A DNA stretch of 64,000 bases, taken from the NCBI GenBank assembly GCA_965644295.1, contig CBFFRP010000199.1, forward strand, positions 310,001 through 374,000. The letters run 5' to 3'. This DNA is from Paraphysomonas bandaiensis. Lineage: Eukaryota; Protista; Chrysophyceae. The notes beneath the pieces are model-generated. The model was not told the DNA's origin, made no database searches, and was given only the letters and a program-made list of their open reading frames with translations. This document shows positions 18,836-26,990 of the stretch, piece after piece. Every line of letters starts with the position of its first letter. Within the stretch, counting starts at the first letter, position 1. Position numbers and translations under genes: made by a program.

Positions 18836-19993
18836 CTACATTTTTGACATTAAGATCAGACCATTTTGCAGCTTGCGATCGAACTGTTTTAACCAATCAT
18901 CATACACACGAAAATGCTTTTTAACTTGATTCTGATAATCGCGATGTGTTTTAGCTTTCAAAGCCGCCGAGCGATTTAGATCAGCCTCTGAAGTACCTGC
19001 ATTAATATCTTTAGTGCCAAGCAGTCCATCGCAGAGTGGTGGGAGATGATTCGAAGTACTTCGTAGTGGATGCTGGGAAGGTGACTTACGTCCTCGTAAT
19101 TCAGAGACTCTGTCCGCCGATTGTGGCGCTTTATAATTGGTTCGAGCTATCGCAGCACTATCATTTGGTTTATCAGCATAGTCTGTACTCAACATCACAG
19201 GTTCTGTAAATGCCCCAACTCTTTCAATGCCTTCGCAAAGAACTTCAAGAGATATTGCCTTTTTGTTCTTGATATCTAAAAAATTGAAGAGGTCACGCAC
19301 TCTAATTTGCCTGTCACGCATGAAGTCCTGTAGGTACGGAATAATCGGACCAGAGCTCATCATTATTGCTTTGCAGTCAGCAGTTCGATGGATCCGCCTG
19401 AAACCTTTTGAGACTTCTTGATAACTAAGATCACCATCTCCGTTGGGGTCCAAATACTTTAGCATGATAGTGAGGTCGTGCTTAGTGAACAATGATGCAC
19501 CTAAGTCCTCGCACAGTTTATTCATACCTGTCTCGAACTCTAGCCATGTTAACTTTCCATCGCCTTTGTTCGCTTGACTCGTATCAACTTCTTTGAACCA
19601 CATTTTCGGTGTCAATGATTTTATCTTTAGTAGAAACTCAAAAGTATTCATCAACCGTCGAGCGTGATACTCTTCATCTTTATTCTTATGAGCTCGTTTA
19701 ACTTTACGAAAGGCAGATTCCATTTCATCTAGCGTGATGCCATATGACTCATCACTTCCACATGATTTCATGAATCTATACACCTGTCGAATATCTTTCA
19801 CTGTAAAGTATCCGTATTTGTCGTTATTTTCTAGTGATAACCGCTCTGTGGGCTTTGAAACGGGCGACATGTGAATCGACTCTTTCGATACTTTTAATTT
19901 CGCGTTGTCTTGAAATGCATCAATGTGCGGTAGAGTTGGCCGCTCAGAGAATGGGAAGGGAGAGTGACCGTAAGACAAGTCCATCTTCGCCAT
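18836..19993 (-). CDS. EF-hand domain protein, intronless
   Basis: 385-aa ORF with EF-hand loops DPNGDGDLSYQE, DTSQANKGDGKLTWLEF and DIKNKKAISLE. Confidence 0.85.
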   Translation of the reverse strand: MAKMDLSYGHSPFPFSERPTLPHIDAFQDNAKLKVSKESIHMSPVSKPTERLSLENNDKYGYFTVKDIRQVYRFMKSCGSDESYGITLDEMESAFRKVKRAHKNKDEEYHARRLMNTFEFLLKIKSLTPKMWFKEVDTSQANKGDGKLTWLEFETGMNKLCEDLGASLFTKHDLTIMLKYLDPNGDGDLSYQEVSKGFRRIHRTADCKAIMMSSGPIIPYLQDFMRDRQIRVRDLFNFLDIKNKKAISLEVLCEGIERVGAFTEPVMLSTDYADKPNDSAAIARTNYKAPQSADRVSELRGRKSPSQHPLRSTSNHLPPLCDGLLGTKDINAGTSEADLNRSAALKAKTHRDYQNQVKKHFRVYDDWLKQFDRKLQNGLILMSKM

Positions 19994-20770
19994 GAGTGCA
20001 GCCTTACCGTACAGGACGTTACGTGTTATCTATTGATAGTTTAGTTAATTCGGTTCGATGACCATGGTATGAATCAGACCGCACAGGGTGGCAGTTAGCT
20101 ATATATATCTGATGGAATGATGACACTGACAGTCACAGTGACCCGCACAGTCGTATGTCACGTACGTAGATGTCTATATGTGTGAGGTCTGTATGTGTGT
20201 GTATGCATATACAGTGAGAACATGAAATGTGTGAAACGCCATATGATACATACATACAGAGTGTATACTGCACTTTTCGCATCGATTATTCCCATATTTT
20301 CCACTTTTTCTAATATTCCGCCCTATAAACTCCAATATGTCGAAAAAACTCCTAAAAAAAGGAGTTCTGTACATATATATACCCGTTATACTCAGTAGTC
20401 GTGTAACTGCTAGCCCAGCATACTGCTGTATGTGTGTCTGTATACATACACCCGCATACATACATATACATACATGCATACACAGACATCTACAGACTGT
20501 TACTGCATGAGCCTGGCACATCACATACATATCCACATGAGTCCAGTTATAAACATACTGCCAAGAAGGTAGAAGCGACTCACAATCAAGTTTAGTCGTT
20601 TTCATTCTTACCCATTGATAGGTGCTTATAATCGTGCTGTATAATACATTGTGAAGATCTTTACGCTCACTGCACACGCTATCAGCCATAGAGTGAACAC
20701 ATAAATAACCACACGATAAACAGTAACTGTCGCTGCTTATAAGCATCCAACTGTGTTCAAATATTGCAGT

Positions 20771-23700
20771 ATGAAGAAAAAACAAGTACTAGTAGTGAAA
20801 AAGATTGAGAAAGTATCTCCAAAGAAGGAGATATATGTCTCAAGGAAGGCTCAGACCTCTCTGGGAAATGCCGCTGATGTTGAGGAGACTTTCGTGGGAA
20901 ATTCTTCCCCTCAGGTTATAACTTTAATGAATTCAAACTGTTGATTTTCTAACATAACTTTTATACATAGCACCCTATACGAGACTCAACTGATATAGTT
21001 ATATCACGGAGTATATTGGGTGATCCGCGATATTTTGAATCCCTGGATGAAAGCCGCGCTTCTGATGAGCACCCATCTCTGTTGAATACGACTGGAAAAG
21101 GAAAGCTGGGTACTTTAAGCCGTGCGGGAACTGCAAATTCTTCTGTTTTGGGGGGACTGAATTCAACCGGCTCCAGGAAATCTTTTACGAAATCTGGGAG
21201 CACAGTGGTTCCCGATATAGACAAAGACCAGTATATCGACTCTTTGAAAGCAATGACGCTTAGAGCTAAGAAAGTTCGCACGCGGGAGCTTGAGAGAGAA
21301 GCTAGTCTAGTCCAGTATTTGCCTGTTAACGAACGCTTTGATTTAAACAAGGAGGGAAAAGTATTGGCAATGTGGCAAGAGAGACAGAACAAGTGGAATG
21401 GCATTCAGAAGAGGTTAGGCAAAAAGGTTGGGACTTCTGCGACGTCACTTGTCATGAATAGTGGAGATGAATATAGAGCACGGAATGAAGAATACGATAT
21501 TCTTCAAGCTGCGATCCCAGTGCAGGAACGGTTTGGGGCAGACAGTTGGCAAATGCAGTTGCGAGATGGAACTGAACGTTCAGTGTCCATTGGTCACGTG
21601 TTTTCAGGTCTAACATGTGGAGTAAGCATTAAAAGAGTGGTCCCGCCAGCGATTAGAAAGCCAAAGCGTATGGGTCGCAAGAAATTGTCAAATACATTTG
21701 TAGATCCAACTCCATCACTTTTACATCGTCAAAAGCAGCTTCATAAAACTTTGGTTACTCTCCGACCGCATAACCTTGGACCAGCCCATGTAGAAGGCTT
21801 AATCATTGATAGCCAAAGCTTATTTGAATGGGCAATTCAGTCGTCTGAGGAATATTTTTCAAGAAAATCAGACACTGCTGTTCCTGATGAATGTAATACT
21901 CAAGAGGAGGAAATAGAGAATCAACAAAATTCGAACCAGTGTCCGAGTGGCGATACAACTCAGATTTTATTTTTATCTCCGAGAAATATACTATTTAATT
22001 GCGAAGACACGGGTGTTGCTCATCAAGCTGTGATGGTTAAAAACACCGGGACAACAGCAATAACGTACGTGTGGAAGGCCGTTCCAGAAAAGGAGCTGCA
22101 CGAGCCTTCAGACGTTGCTGATGTCATGCTTCGGCGCCAGAATTCCCCAAGGTGTCACACGCTGAGTAAAGCACGATCATATTTTCATTGCTTTCAACCT
22201 ACTGGTCAGATTCTTCCTGGTGACAGTGTTGCGACAATGTTTAGTTTTTCAAGCAGAGGAATGGGTGGATCATTTCATGAGACGTGGATGTTAGACACAT
22301 TGCCTAGGGCTATTGTTTCCTATCAAGAAAATCCGCAATCGGGTCTGCATATGGATAATACAAAGCCGAAAGTGGCTGCTACTCTTCCTTCAACTGTGTA
22401 CATTAAATTGAAAGGTCATGCAAACACATTCGATGAGGACAAACACCTAAGGGATCAAGTTGCATTAAACGTTTCTAGTCAATGCCGCATTGAATATCTA
22501 AAAAATGAGGCTTATCTCAGTGTGCGAAGAGTGAGATCTCCAGTTAGTATATCTGCTCTGAAAGAGAGGAAGGTTGCAAAGTTTATTGAAATTAATGGGT
22601 TACTTTTGGCAGAAAATTGTTCGTTTATGGCACATCCATCGGGACTTCATTTGACATACGATCGGTTTGAGGAATTTATTAATATGTGGGCGAAAACAGT
22701 CGAGTTTGTATCTAATCTACAGTCGTTGTATTCGGACAGAATAGCATCAATCCCTTCTTCTTTGGGTATCGAAGTTTCTGGAGAATCATGTTGCACAGAA
22801 TTGTCCAATCTTCTTGATAAGTCCCAGAAAAGTGCTCGCGATTTACTTTTTCCAGAGAAGAATTTGGTAAGTTTACGAGATTCTTATTTGCGCATTTGTA
22901 ATGTCCTATGCAGGAAGTGTTTGACAGTGTGACTGAAGAAGATATATCACTTAACTGGGATATGGACTTATGCAGATTTTTGGAGATTACAAAATTGTGC
23001 ATTGAATTGGCCGAGTGTATTATGCACATTGATGTTGCAGTGGCTGCTGTAAGTAGAATATGTTTCACTTTCTACTGTTCACTGTATCACAGGCTGAGCG
23101 TGATGCGGAGAAAAAAAGAATTCGTGCTGCTAGAGTTAGTGCAGACTCAGATGAGGATGAGGATGAGGAGGAAGACATCGATGATGAAGACGAGGAAGAT
23201 AATGATGATAGTGGTCTGAAAAGTAGTGACAAGCAAAAAAGTGCTTTAGAGTTGGAGGCACATCGACTGCATAGCTATTTGACACAACAGATGATGTCCC
23301 TTGCTATTAGCCCACATCCAGAGCTTTCGTCAACTTTTCAGCGTGTTATCACCAACACAGTTGATAATTTTTCTGACTTTAAAAACGAATCGTTAGAAAT
23401 TTCATCAATTAACGTGGATGCTGAAATCCCAATTATTCCGAGTGCATTCACCACAAATGAGGGAGCTGAATTTTGGAATAGTATATTGAATCAAGATGGA
23501 GTGACCGGAGGAAAAAAATCAGGGGGGAAATCTCAGAAAGGTGCTATTTCTGACGACCAAAAGAAGAAATATTACTTAAGCATGTATCAACGTGTCCATG
23601 AATCATTGATTCGAGAACTAGTCAGCGGGCTTTGTGCTGTTGACGAAGTATGCCACAATAGTACTGAAAAGAAGCTTGCGGAAACAGGATACAATGATTT

Positions 23701-25552
23701 GCCATTAGTGTCAGCACTGCGGACAGAAGATATCGGGATTAATGACAAAAATACTCCAGTATTTGTGTATGTTGATACTACCTGCTTTATCTTTTCTGAC
23801 GAAGATTGTATTTCGGAAGCATCAGTGCGTATTAGGAAGCAGGAAGCCCTAGAACCTGTTGTACGTGCTGTTGAATATGGGGCACGAAATCTTGTGTTGT
23901 TATTTTCACTGAAAACACGGAGCGCTCTTGAAAATCCTTCTCAGCTTGGTAGCTCTATCGAAACTTTTCTATCGAAAGAGTTTAGTGTTTTGTCTCGCTC
24001 TCGGGTGACATCGAATATAGAATTCCGAGTTACGTTTGTCCCATGTCTACCCACACTAAAGCATTTGCTCTCAGAATATGAAACTGAAATCAAGGATATA
24101 TCTGTGAATATAGTGAATATATTTCTTTTGGATAATATTAATTCGCCTTCAATTGTTCCATCCGAAATTCCATATGTCGAAGCTGAAAGTGATGACGAAG
24201 CCGATTCAATTCCTATAGGTCTGGATGAATTTGCTGCAGAAAAGCTGAGTATTTGGAAAGAAGGCCGTCCAGGAACTGTTGCAGTCGATTTACCGGAGTC
24301 ATGTGGGAATAGCACGGTTTACTGCATTGCCGATGTTTGTGCTGCGCTTTCTGATATAGTAAAATCCACTGGGGGGTTGTGGGTAGAAGGGCATGCATCG
24401 CATTTATTTCCCTCTTCAGACGCAACACCTTACTGTGTTACGCCTAAAATGTTTGTATCAGAAAGTGTTCGAAATGTCGCGATTTGGGTTGGCTTGGTGT
24501 GCCAATTTCCCGGGCTTTCTTTAATACGAGATCAAGTACAACACAAGGATATGCCTGATCTTTCGTCTGATTGTGACGCGATATTTTCTTTTCCTCAGTT
24601 TGTTGCAAACCTTTTTCCCCCTGAGATAGTGCACCCAAAACTCATAGTAACATTGGGAGGTAATATCCAACCCGAAAAGTTTAGTATGTTGGATAATCTC
24701 ATTGAATTGGTAAGTGACAGTCGTATATATATGAAAGTTTTTGATCATACTACTCTATTCTAGGCTGATACTGTTATTTTGCTGGGTGAGTTCTGTGTTC
24801 CTTTTTTGCGCGCTCAAGGAGTATCATTCGTGCAAATGAATGATGTGTGTGAAACATATACTAGTGCTTGCAATCTTATTATTCAAAAAGCCCGTGTGCG
24901 TGGTGTCAATCTCTTGCTTCCCATTGACGTTATAACTGGCGACGAGCAACTGACCTTTGACAGTCCTTTACCATCCGTAAGTTTAGATAATGATACACAA
25001 GATGAGGGTGTTGATTACGACGGGGAGAGCACTGTTGTTTCGTTGTTCGATGATGACAATAGGCTCCTAACATCTGAAGTACAAGGCTTTCCGTATGACG
25101 TTGGCCCGTCGACGTGTCACATGTTGACAAATGAAATTAAAAATCATCATGTTCATTTCTCGTGGGGGTCTGCGGGTTGCTGCGAGTATTCATCTTTCCA
25201 AGGAGGTCAACGTGCAGTGATCAGTGCTTCGACACCACCGCGCTGTATTGAATCTACTGTTAATAGCACTGAAATTTCCCATGTATTACCCTACAATGTT
25301 ATCGTTGGTGAGTCGACGGTAGAGTGGTGGAGCCGTATTGCTGATTCCGATAACGAATATGATGGCAACATAATGAAGAAAGGCGTAGCCAAACTTTCGA
25401 CTAGAAATTCCAAGTCAGTTTCATCAATCATTTGTCAAGTTCCTTCCGGGAAATTGAGTGCTTTCGGAAAACGGACGCCATGCAAAAATGAATGGGATTA
25501 TTTCACTCCTGAGCCGGATAGCGAAGCTGAAAGCGACGACGAAGATGAATAG
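20771..25552 (+). CDS. MYCBP-associated protein (MYCBPAP) fused to a degenerate phosphoglycerate kinase fold, five exons
   Basis: MYCBPAP-like W..IQKRL..LVMNSGDEYRARNEE, NTGTTAITYVW, GQILPGD..FSFSS..GSFHETW, then an acidic linker and PGK-like N and C domains. In-frame GT-AG introns lie near 20914-20970, 22867-22913, 23049-23091 and 24710-24763. Confidence 0.82.
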
Positions 25553-25879
25553 ATCATCGTCTGTAACCTAAGTTATTATTCGTACCAGAGTATTTGCATA
25601 CTGATAAGTGTTTAATTAAATATTATATAAGCATTCCCACAACTATTATCACGTACGGTCAATATAAGACAAAATCTGAGAGAACACACAATAGCCGTGA
25701 AGAAAAGAATAAGTAGCACTATCAAGAATTTGATATTGGGATGGTTAAAACTTAAGCAACTGAGCGTTGAACTCACTCAATAATTAATTTTAGTATATAT
25801 TTTAATAAGCACTTCTCATTCACTAAATATATATATCTTCTCTTCACTATTCACTATGTGAGATCATTCTATGGACATT

Positions 25880-26990
25880 ATAGTTTTTCAACAATCTTCG
25901 ATTTTTATCCTAAAAAAGTGTCTTTCATATCAAAATTGCAATTAATTGAAGCGAGCTGGATATTATTATATTATTATTGTAATTGCAATTTCAATATTTA
26001 ACAATTAATTGCAATTGATATGCAACCCTGGAATACAGTATATCTAAAGACTGTTCTCTGTACTATATGATTTTTAATGATATTATTGCTATGAGAGAGT
26101 TCGATGCACTGAAATATATTGATTATACTAGAGCGCGTCTATCTAATATCTGATTATATTGATTGGTTAATTCATTTAACTTAATTAGCGATATGAGCGA
26201 CAAACTGGCTGCAGAAGACATTGCATGAGTGTTATTTGAGAAAAAGTAAATGATAATAACGACGAGGCTACAATGAAGATTTGTCCTGTAGGAAAAGGGG
26301 CTCCACATTTGCAATGATTGACCGCTACTTGCTTCTATCTAATCATATGCCATCATCATTCGAGTTTAGTTCCGACGTGTAAAGACTAATGCCATGTGAA
26401 ACGATGCATGCTAAGCTCGTGCGATACGAGAGGTATAGGAATTGTTTCAACTAGTATAATCCTTACAATTACTGAAGTAAGAGGTTAACACCAGCTTGAC
26501 CTTCACGACGTTTGTTTGACGAACTCATCACAGGGCACCCGATTGATGAGCGTCATCTGGGCGTCAGCTGCTATTATTCATAACGCTGCTTTCGAAAAGG
26601 CAGTTGTGAAGATTCAATGTGGCAACGAAGCCGTAACTCGGACGGAAAAGATCAAATTAAAGTATTTTTGCTTGATGAAGAAGAAGAAGATTATATGACG
26701 GTGCGAGTCTAGTTCCGAATGACGACGAAGCACAACGTTTGATTGATGGTGGCAGGCAGCGGAAGCGAGCAAGACGTAACCACAGCATGAAACACTTGCA
26801 TGCCACAACCAATATGGTTGAGAGGTTGTTCAGTAGAGCTACGATTGTTATGAAGGGCTTGCGCAAAAGCTTGACTTCTCAACATTTAAGAGCTACTAAT
26901 GTTTTTACCCATGAATCGTCGCCTCTGGAAAGAAATGACAATTGAGGTAGCTATATTGGCAGCTAGGGTATTTTAGTACTAATTAATTGC
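25880..26990 (+). mobile_element. hAT transposon relics (terminal ...CAACCCTG at 26030 and decayed transposase C-terminus)
   Basis: ATTGCAAT-rich subterminal repeats end in CCCTG. Fragments FEKAVVKIQCG and TTNMVERLFSRA..LRKSL (hAT dimerisation domain) contain stops and frameshifts. Confidence 0.7.

Follow-up and report, generated by a model that had tools for sequence, protein, structure and literature searches.

The 64,000-nucleotide (nt) window of the chrysophyte Paraphysomonas bandaiensis analysed here (contig CBFFRP010000199.1, positions 310,001 to 374,000) carries, at window positions 20771-25552, a gene whose product joins a MYCBPAP domain to a phosphoglycerate kinase (PGK) fold that is complete as modelled. 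We consider it likely that this gene is the organism's only MYCBPAP/FAP147 orthologue, that its PGK module is catalytically dead, and that this module serves as a non-catalytic structural or binding head on C2a, a projection of the flagellar central apparatus.

One expressed gene and its MYCBPAP domain

In the open reading frame (ORF) listing, the region appears as three long ORFs and a short one on the plus strand, with short gaps between them. Reading the junctions gave a five-exon gene on that strand, with a spliced coding sequence (CDS) of 4,581 nt that encodes 1,526 amino acids (aa) without internal stop, and with four GT..AG introns of 56, 47, 44 and 54 nt (Table 1). A HMMER search of 1.84 billion representative proteins retrieved a protein of the same length (P0001, 1,526 aa), five residues of which differ from the derived model. 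Its source is a 4,884-nt transcript-type contig (L001, JGI 3300017004), which aligns to the window in five blocks of 99.3-100% identity, with precisely the four introns absent.

Splicing was also checked by placing the contigs of four public runs on window positions 20555-25639. RNA contigs of runs X1, X4 and X5 (three studies, X5 being a polyA marine metatranscriptome) show the 56/47/44/54 skips with GT..AG borders, and one 4,898-nt contig of X1 spans all five exons, while the DNA run X18 matches the window colinearly, introns included. The fusion is a single expressed gene with one fused mRNA, as established across the three studies. A previous interpretation, made from the letters of the window (hereafter the sequence-only reading), had joined a MYCBPAP-like region, an acidic linker and both PGK lobes through four "in-frame introns". 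The joining is confirmed by L001 and by the RNA contigs, all four introns being spliced in X1, X4 and X5, and in place of two separate transcripts single contigs of ~4.9 kb (L001, X1) span all the exons. As for the wording, the exons are indeed joined in frame, but of the four introns only the fourth is a multiple of three nucleotides long; its last three letters form a TAG in frame.

Relative to the window, the transcript contigs and X18 show twelve single-base differences (21168, 21878, 22353, 22389, 22449, 23039, 23914, 24176, 25216, 25237, 25378 and 25515). They result in five amino-acid changes, among them K999N at the Arg65-equivalent position, and probably correspond to strain or haplotype variants.

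At the domain level, the MYCBPAP and PGK models of Pfam, both of which had been proposed as HMMER checks, match above their gathering cut-offs (24.5 bits for PF14646 and 27 bits for PF00162). PF14646 (MYCBPAP) is found in exon 2 (E 2e-22, 80.1 bits) and at aa 176-573 of P0001 (E 4e-20, 72.6 bits), the match covering profile positions 3-400 of 439, whereas PF00162 (PGK) matches aa 1242-1420 of P0001 (E 8e-14, 51.8 bits) and exon 5 taken alone (E 3e-8). The segment between the MYCBPAP domain and the linker (aa 574-725) is also conserved.

Concerning orthology, the window protein matches Chlamydomonas FAP147 (7n61/7som) with a phmmer E of 8e-9, and the family profile does so with an E of 8e-19 (profile positions 168-588 on FAP147 136-575); the same profile matches mammalian MYCBPAP (9ijj) with an E of 1e-7. 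This gene is the single PF14646 match in the 62.6-Mb genome, in which CFAP65-type Ig domains are present at two loci. FAP147 has been described as the stalk ("rachis") of C2a, which organises FAP65 and FAP70 and part of which threads between C2 protofilaments (10.1101/2022.01.23.477438). In the mouse, the loss of MYCBPAP collapses C2a; it has been linked to phenotypes resembling primary ciliary dyskinesia, and studies in both Chlamydomonas and mouse are establishing which proteins make up C2a (PMC13345628). The assignment of MYCBPAP/FAP147 to the central apparatus, as given by the sequence-only reading, agrees with this literature and can be refined to the C2a stalk on microtubule C2 (10.1101/2022.01.23.477438; PMC13345628).

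The same genome also has a canonical PGK gene of at least seven exons, on the minus strand of contig C283 (11965-13387, locus L002), with the motifs RVDFNVP, SHCGRP, LENVRF, AFGTAHR, GGAKV, GGGM, WNGPMGVFEF, GGGDS and STGGGAS. It is of cyanobacterial type (66% identity to Thermosynechococcus over 98 aligned residues of one exon) and is probably the plastid-derived enzyme. It was the only canonical PGK recovered by a six-frame genome search, which gives lower bounds and detected no separate cytosolic or mitochondrial PGK.

The PGK-like module and its active-site residues

The fold of the module is complete in the structural model, with both Rossmann-like lobes and the C-terminal return. The AlphaFold2 (AF2) model of aa 926-1526, built without templates from an alignment of 47 family members, has a mean predicted local distance difference test score (pLDDT) of 88.5 and a predicted template modelling score (pTM) of 0.90; in the fold search it is closer to open-form PGKs than to closed ones, and its structure-based alignment with canonical PGKs (e.g. 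1php and human PGK1) gives 14-18% identity. At the profile level, hhalign aligned the 16-member family alignment with 34 bacterial PGKs end to end (probability 99.7%, E 1e-24, 390 columns), and the family profile matches PGKs of the PDB with an E of 4e-19. The N-lobe piece alone gave no phmmer match among PDB sequences; its homology emerged with the family profiles and the structure. The presence of both lobes, as previously proposed, is thus borne out by AF2, the fold search and the full-length hhalign alignment, and the region ~23690-25500 does match the PGK fold in both the fold search (by its model) and hhalign.

When the model was extended to aa 781-1526 (pLDDT 84.3, pTM 0.84), the additional aa 781-925 were predicted to form a helical bundle, from which a 45-residue helix runs into the PGK N-lobe. 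The module exceeds a canonical PGK by ~190 residues, mainly through N-lobe insertions that include a conserved acidic SDD[DE]EAPI.IG motif. Another conserved insertion, of 15 residues (EWW.R..D.DGE), directly follows the GDST motif of the C-lobe.

A further PDB sequence was encountered among the matches to the C-lobe profile of the family: chain O of entry 9io5 (E 2e-13), labelled "Phosphoglycerate kinase", one of three chains in the entry and, with its 511 aa, ~100 residues longer than usual PGKs.

PGK sites were mapped via the hhalign alignment, with human PGK1 numbering set by motif context, and tallied over 16 or 47 family members (Table 1). All eight PGK motif pairs of the sequence-only reading were reproduced by this profile-profile alignment, and its description of the module as catalytically dead with a lost basic patch agrees with the tallies: a lysine is absent at position 215 in all 47 relatives, and four of the five residues of the basic patch for 3-phosphoglycerate (3-PG) and 1,3-bisphosphoglycerate (R38, H62, R65, R122 and R170) are gone, including Arg170, replaced by Glu, with only the R38 position listed as basic. 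An arginine stands one position after the lost Lys215 in 9 of 16 relatives; in the window protein this residue is Gln. With regard to the glycine loops, the reported loss holds for G236, G238, G371, G372 and G394-396, but not for G212, G213, G237, G337, G340 and G373, which are kept and invariant. Judged from these residues, the PGK reaction is not credible for this module, because Lys215 and the basic patch are gone.

Family members and uneven conservation

At E<=1e-3, the HMMER search yielded 52 cluster representatives. MYCBPAP is contained in all 16 long members of the family (1,196-1,705 aa). Eight members, seemingly without C-lobe, stop exactly at the intron 4 position. In L089, L090 and L091, the ORF that comes next on this strand begins 0-60 nt downstream and matches the C-lobe (E 2e-64 to 3e-88). 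L092 consists of four colinear ORFs of one fusion gene and is also interrupted close to where introns 2 and 3 would fall. The ORF break follows LID[LV], inside the PGK fold, and homologues of only 25-27% identity have it at, or close to, the corresponding point; its recurrence is why ORF callers of the prokaryotic type report two ORFs for the gene, one with MYCBPAP and one with PGK. Judged from these four loci, the members seemingly devoid of a C-lobe are intron-split calls of complete fusions. The possibility that L092 uses the ciliate code was considered and rejected, since it can be read with the standard code and proved to be another intron-split fusion.

Named members are Mallomonas annulata (P0036), Dinobryon divergens (P0066, 1,619 aa), Chromulina nebulosa and Ochromonadaceae sp. 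CCMP2298 (P0070). The last corresponds to NCBI KAJ1421692.1, annotated merely as a MYCBP-associated-protein-domain protein. Both Pfam domains, MYCBPAP followed by PGK, are found in the Dinobryon and Ochromonadaceae proteins and, via precomputed Pfam, in that of Mallomonas. Among the named cluster members there is no ciliate or other alveolate: the names are chrysophyte or synurophyte, plus one "archaeon" protein from a metagenome-assembled genome (MAG). A word-index protein search with the PGK region, the index being too insensitive for this family, returned only the query, while one with full-length alignment gave 16 matches, mostly unnamed; a feature search of a protein atlas gave no usable match. 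No other family member exceeds 37% identity to the window protein, which thus belongs to a different ochrophyte lineage.

The "archaeon" protein (P0044, NCBI RYH22342.1, "hypothetical protein [archaeon]") is a 418-aa family member of the PGK-like N-lobe (hmmsearch E 2e-68), and a binning error probably placed its contig, a eukaryotic sequence, in an archaeal MAG.

Conservation was measured on the eight complete members of alignment A1. As a whole, the PGK C-lobe is the best conserved part of the protein, equal to or above the MYCBPAP domain: mean pairwise identity and invariant columns are 40% and 14.0% in the C-lobe and 38% and 13.6% in the MYCBPAP core, vs. 26% and 3.5% in the PGK N-lobe and 22% and 0.7% in the helical adaptor. 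The invariant C-lobe residues lie at or beside the old nucleotide motifs (GG...K, GE..PF, LP.D, D.G, WG..G.CE..FQ.G and IG[DE]ST.EW), which suggests a specific role for this lobe, either ligand binding or a fixed protein contact. The alignment indicates that the dead PGK module is under selection, although unevenly: the C-lobe is constrained and the former 3-PG site has decayed.

Table 1. Features of the fusion gene and state of the mapped PGK sites (human PGK1 numbering). Positions refer to the window, unless a homologue contig is named.
Feature	Position	Strand	Evidence or remark
5' untranslated region (minimum extent)	20555..20770	+	L001 and X1 contigs begin at or before 20555-20565; first in-frame ATG 20771
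Exon 1 CDS, aa 1-48	20771..20914	+	basic N-terminus KKK..VVKK..SPKK..SR, kept in homologues
Intron 1, 56 nt, GT..AG	20915..20970	+	removed in L001 and in X1, X4 RNA contigs; present in DNA run X18
Exon 2, aa 49-680	20971..22866	+	MYCBPAP Pfam domain aa 176-573 = 21352-22545
Intron 2, 47 nt, GT..AG	22867..22913	+	transcript contig, RNA contigs
Exon 3, aa 681-725	22914..23048	+	transcript contig, RNA contigs
Intron 3, 44 nt, GT..AG	23049..23092	+	skip in X1, X4, X5
Exon 4, aa 726-1264	23093..24709	+	acidic linker, helical adaptor, PGK-like N-lobe, C-lobe start including GGNIQPEK
Acidic Asp/Glu-rich linker, aa 741-773	23138-23236	+	present, as in the sequence-only reading
Helical adaptor, ~145 aa, aa 781-925	23258-23692	+	AF2
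PGK-like fold, aa ~929-1501	23702-25474	+	hhalign, AF2; intron 4 inside
Intron 4, 54 nt, GT..AG	24710..24763	+	in-frame TAG at its end; transcript contig, RNA contigs
Exon 5, aa 1265-1526 + stop	24764..25552	+	rest of PGK-like C-lobe, C-terminal return to N-lobe, acidic tail
Acidic tail, aa 1513-1526	25508-25549	+	sequence
3' untranslated region (minimum extent)	25553..25639	+	transcript contigs extend to 25639
ORF break matching intron 4 in homologues	L089 7810-7871; L090 ~7591; L091 5803-5854; L092 4188-4204		L092 by ORF colinearity
Lys215 (catalytic, GGAK) to Ile1250	24665-24667	+	L/I/A/C/V/F in 47/47 relatives; Lys 0/47
Asn25 to Thr955			lost
His62 to Phe996			lost
Arg65 to Lys999 (Asn in transcript allele)			lost
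Arg122 to Asn1075			lost
Arg170 to Glu1157			lost, conserved charge reversal; E/D in 44/47
Gly236 to Leu			lost
Gly238 to Glu1273			lost; Glu 16/16
Asn336 to Trp1398			lost; Trp 16/16
Gly371 to Val			lost
Gly372 deleted			lost
Gly394-396 to Ser-Val-Ser			lost
Asp23			kept
Arg38 = R973			kept here, variable across the family
Gly212, Gly213			kept, invariant
Lys219 = Lys1254	24677-24679	+	kept 47/47
Gly237, Asp314, Gly316, Gly337, Gly340, Glu343 (= Glu1405), Gly373			kept, each 16/16
Asp374 to Glu			acid retained; Asp 9/16, Glu 3/16
Ser at position 375			kept

As for the surroundings of the gene, a divergent ORF of 385 aa, in which Pfam detects a pair of EF-hands (E 1e-7), lies on the minus strand at 18836-19993, ~560 nt upstream of the start of the fusion transcript, and the two may share a bidirectional promoter region. 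Just beyond the 3' untranslated region, window positions 25600-26200 are very rich in AT (27% GC) and contain short palindromic repeats (AATTG/CAATT). On the homologue contig L093 (390-6201), the PGK-bearing part of a fusion has BBS7 (Bardet-Biedl), encoded on the opposite strand, as a neighbour at ~1 kb, so that two cilium genes adjoin.

Role of the module and known systems

By its orthology, the window protein would be the C2a stalk of this organism. The PGK-fold module would be carried on this stalk as an added head, presumably with a scaffold or binding role, and the C-lobe, once the nucleotide lobe, would form a functionally constrained surface. Several points weigh against this reading. 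The C2a location is deduced from orthology. The N-lobe residues were mapped by profile alignment at ~16-20% identity, so R38 and R65 may be one residue off. The retained K219, E343, acidic residue at 374 and several glycines may allow nucleotide binding, in which case a "pure scaffold" may be too narrow a description. Finally, a 2020 review of PGKs, in its treatment of the Tetrahymena fusion, speculates on a role outside the cilium (PMC7729029).

The strongest alternative, which we regard as a possibility short of probable, makes the module a ligand sensor: its C-lobe would bind ADP/ATP or another nucleotide without phosphotransfer, and the hinge, or the occupancy of the site, would alter the contacts between C2a and the radial spokes. 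If true, beat regulation would be coupled to the energy charge of the axoneme. The invariant residues are indeed PGK nucleotide contacts (G212/G213, K219, G237, G337, G340, E343, G373 and the acid at 374), they lie in the best-conserved part of the protein, and a model nearer to open-form PGKs is compatible with a hinge. However, the invariant changes of G238 to Glu and N336 to Trp lie inside the old adenine/phosphate pocket and could fill it, G371/372 and G394-396 are gone, and the conservation of the C-lobe could equally mean a protein-protein interface. A broader version is doubtful in our estimation: the module would be an ancient, dedicated nucleotide sensor of the central apparatus, acting by its hinge via the C2a stalk on the spokes and so adjusting the beat to the axonemal energy charge. 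Such a module would be older than the divergence of stramenopiles and alveolates, would maybe share its origin with the trypanosomatid PGK-like protein PGKL, and would have been lost from the MYCBPAP of green algae and animals.

It is very unlikely that the module is still an enzyme, either a PGK working through substitute residues or a kinase for another substrate, making ATP locally in the flagellum. The flagella of several organisms carry glycolytic enzymes and the Tetrahymena fusion is treated as a PGK isoenzyme, according to the review's account (PMC7729029), and the arginine next to the lost Lys215 in part of the relatives could be taken as a substitute. Against this, Lys215 is absent throughout the 47 relatives and the adjacent residue is not basic in the window protein, the basic patch is reduced to one of five residues with an acid at R170 in 44 of 47 members, and the N-lobe, which bears the substrate site, is weakly conserved in comparison with the C-lobe (26% vs. 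40% identity). Residual PGK activity was rejected on the mapped sites, Lys215 and the basic patch being lost.

An equally slim chance is given to a non-ciliary role, whether nuclear, Myc-related or linked to conjugation. The speculation on the Tetrahymena MYCBPAP-PGK, as presented in the review, derives from its expression timing in conjugation (PMC7729029). On the other hand, MYCBPAP/FAP147 is located in the C2a arm by cryo-electron microscopy and is needed for mouse C2a (10.1101/2022.01.23.477438; PMC13345628), the window gene is the sole MYCBPAP gene of a flagellate genome that also has CFAP65, and the Tetrahymena protein occurs in ciliary cross-linking data (10.1101/2025.09.22.677704). Lastly, an annotation artefact, i.e. 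neighbouring MYCBPAP and PGK-like genes wrongly joined, might be suspected from the ORF callers that split several homologues in two, but it was rejected and has next to no probability, given a single 4.9-kb transcript contig over all exons in two independent assemblies, the splicing of intron 4 in three RNA studies, and a split that interrupts the PGK fold, at the shared position of intron 4, instead of separating the two domains.

The preferred reading, a non-catalytic head on C2a, implies that the C2a stalk protein of stramenopiles, and of ciliates according to the literature, carries an additional pseudo-enzyme-fold module of ~600 residues, whose former nucleotide lobe is conserved to the same degree as the MYCBPAP core. 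It would also correct the published account, in which the Tetrahymena fusion is a glycolytic enzyme that moonlights, the Tetrahymena protein being known here by its published architecture. The module provides a concrete case for testing a long-standing question, namely why folds of metabolic enzymes occur in the central pair; Tetrahymena is genetically tractable, and its central apparatus can be studied by cryo-electron tomography. The advance is moderate because the MYCBPAP-PGK architecture (in Tetrahymena, as described in PMC7729029, and unremarked in the NCBI ochromonad entry) and the idea of a dead flagellar PGK are already on record. New here are the transcript and fold proof, the family-wide loss of Lys215 and of the basic patch, the asymmetry of constraint between C-lobe and N-lobe, and the link with the C2a stalk.

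Among known systems, the closest is the "MYCBPAP-PGK" of Tetrahymena thermophila (TTHERM_00856750), which the 2020 review lists as a multidomain PGK isoenzyme that may act in the nucleus or moonlight; in the part devoted to it, this protein is discussed as retaining a metabolic function, and the link to C2a is not made (PMC7729029). By the published description of its architecture, it resembles the window protein in having an N-terminal MYCBPAP and a C-terminal PGK part in a ciliated organism of the SAR group (stramenopiles, alveolates and Rhizaria). A preprint of 2025-26 lists the Tetrahymena "phosphoglycerate kinase (MYCBPAP-PGK)" among ciliary cross-link partners (10.1101/2025.09.22.677704). 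In the literature found, no source ties the fusion to the C2a projection or calls it a pseudo-enzyme.

Chlamydomonas FAP147 (976 aa) and mammalian MYCBPAP (932 aa), single-copy C2a stalk proteins (7n61, 7som, 9ijj), have a homologous MYCBPAP core, which is the only part that matches, no PGK-like part being detected in them. Of the 1,526 aa of the window protein, ~750 are additional and form the linker, the helical adaptor, the PGK fold and the acidic tail. Compared with canonical PGK (PF00162), the module lacks K215, H62, R65, R122, R170, N336 and several glycines, and has the additional length described above.

Trypanosomatid PGKL (Tb927.11.2380; Brown et al.) is, as the review summarises it, an axonemal protein with a catalytically dead PGK domain, and provides a precedent for a pseudo-PGK as a structural or regulatory part of the flagellum (PMC7729029). 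In that summary, however, its PGK domain is N-terminal and followed by cyclic-nucleotide-binding and helix-turn-helix-like domains, without MYCBPAP. The window protein does not fit this layout: its PGK part is C-terminal, it has no cyclic-nucleotide-binding domain, and its Pfam domains are MYCBPAP and PGK only. T. brucei is reported to be without a FAP147 homologue (PMC12154619).

Metabolic folds are otherwise known from the central apparatus, where CPC1 has an adenylate-kinase domain and enolase is part of C1b. These are likewise metabolic-enzyme folds on central-pair projections, but they belong to C1 and are at least partly active, whereas the module described here would sit on the C2a stalk protein and is, judging by its residues, inactive as a PGK.

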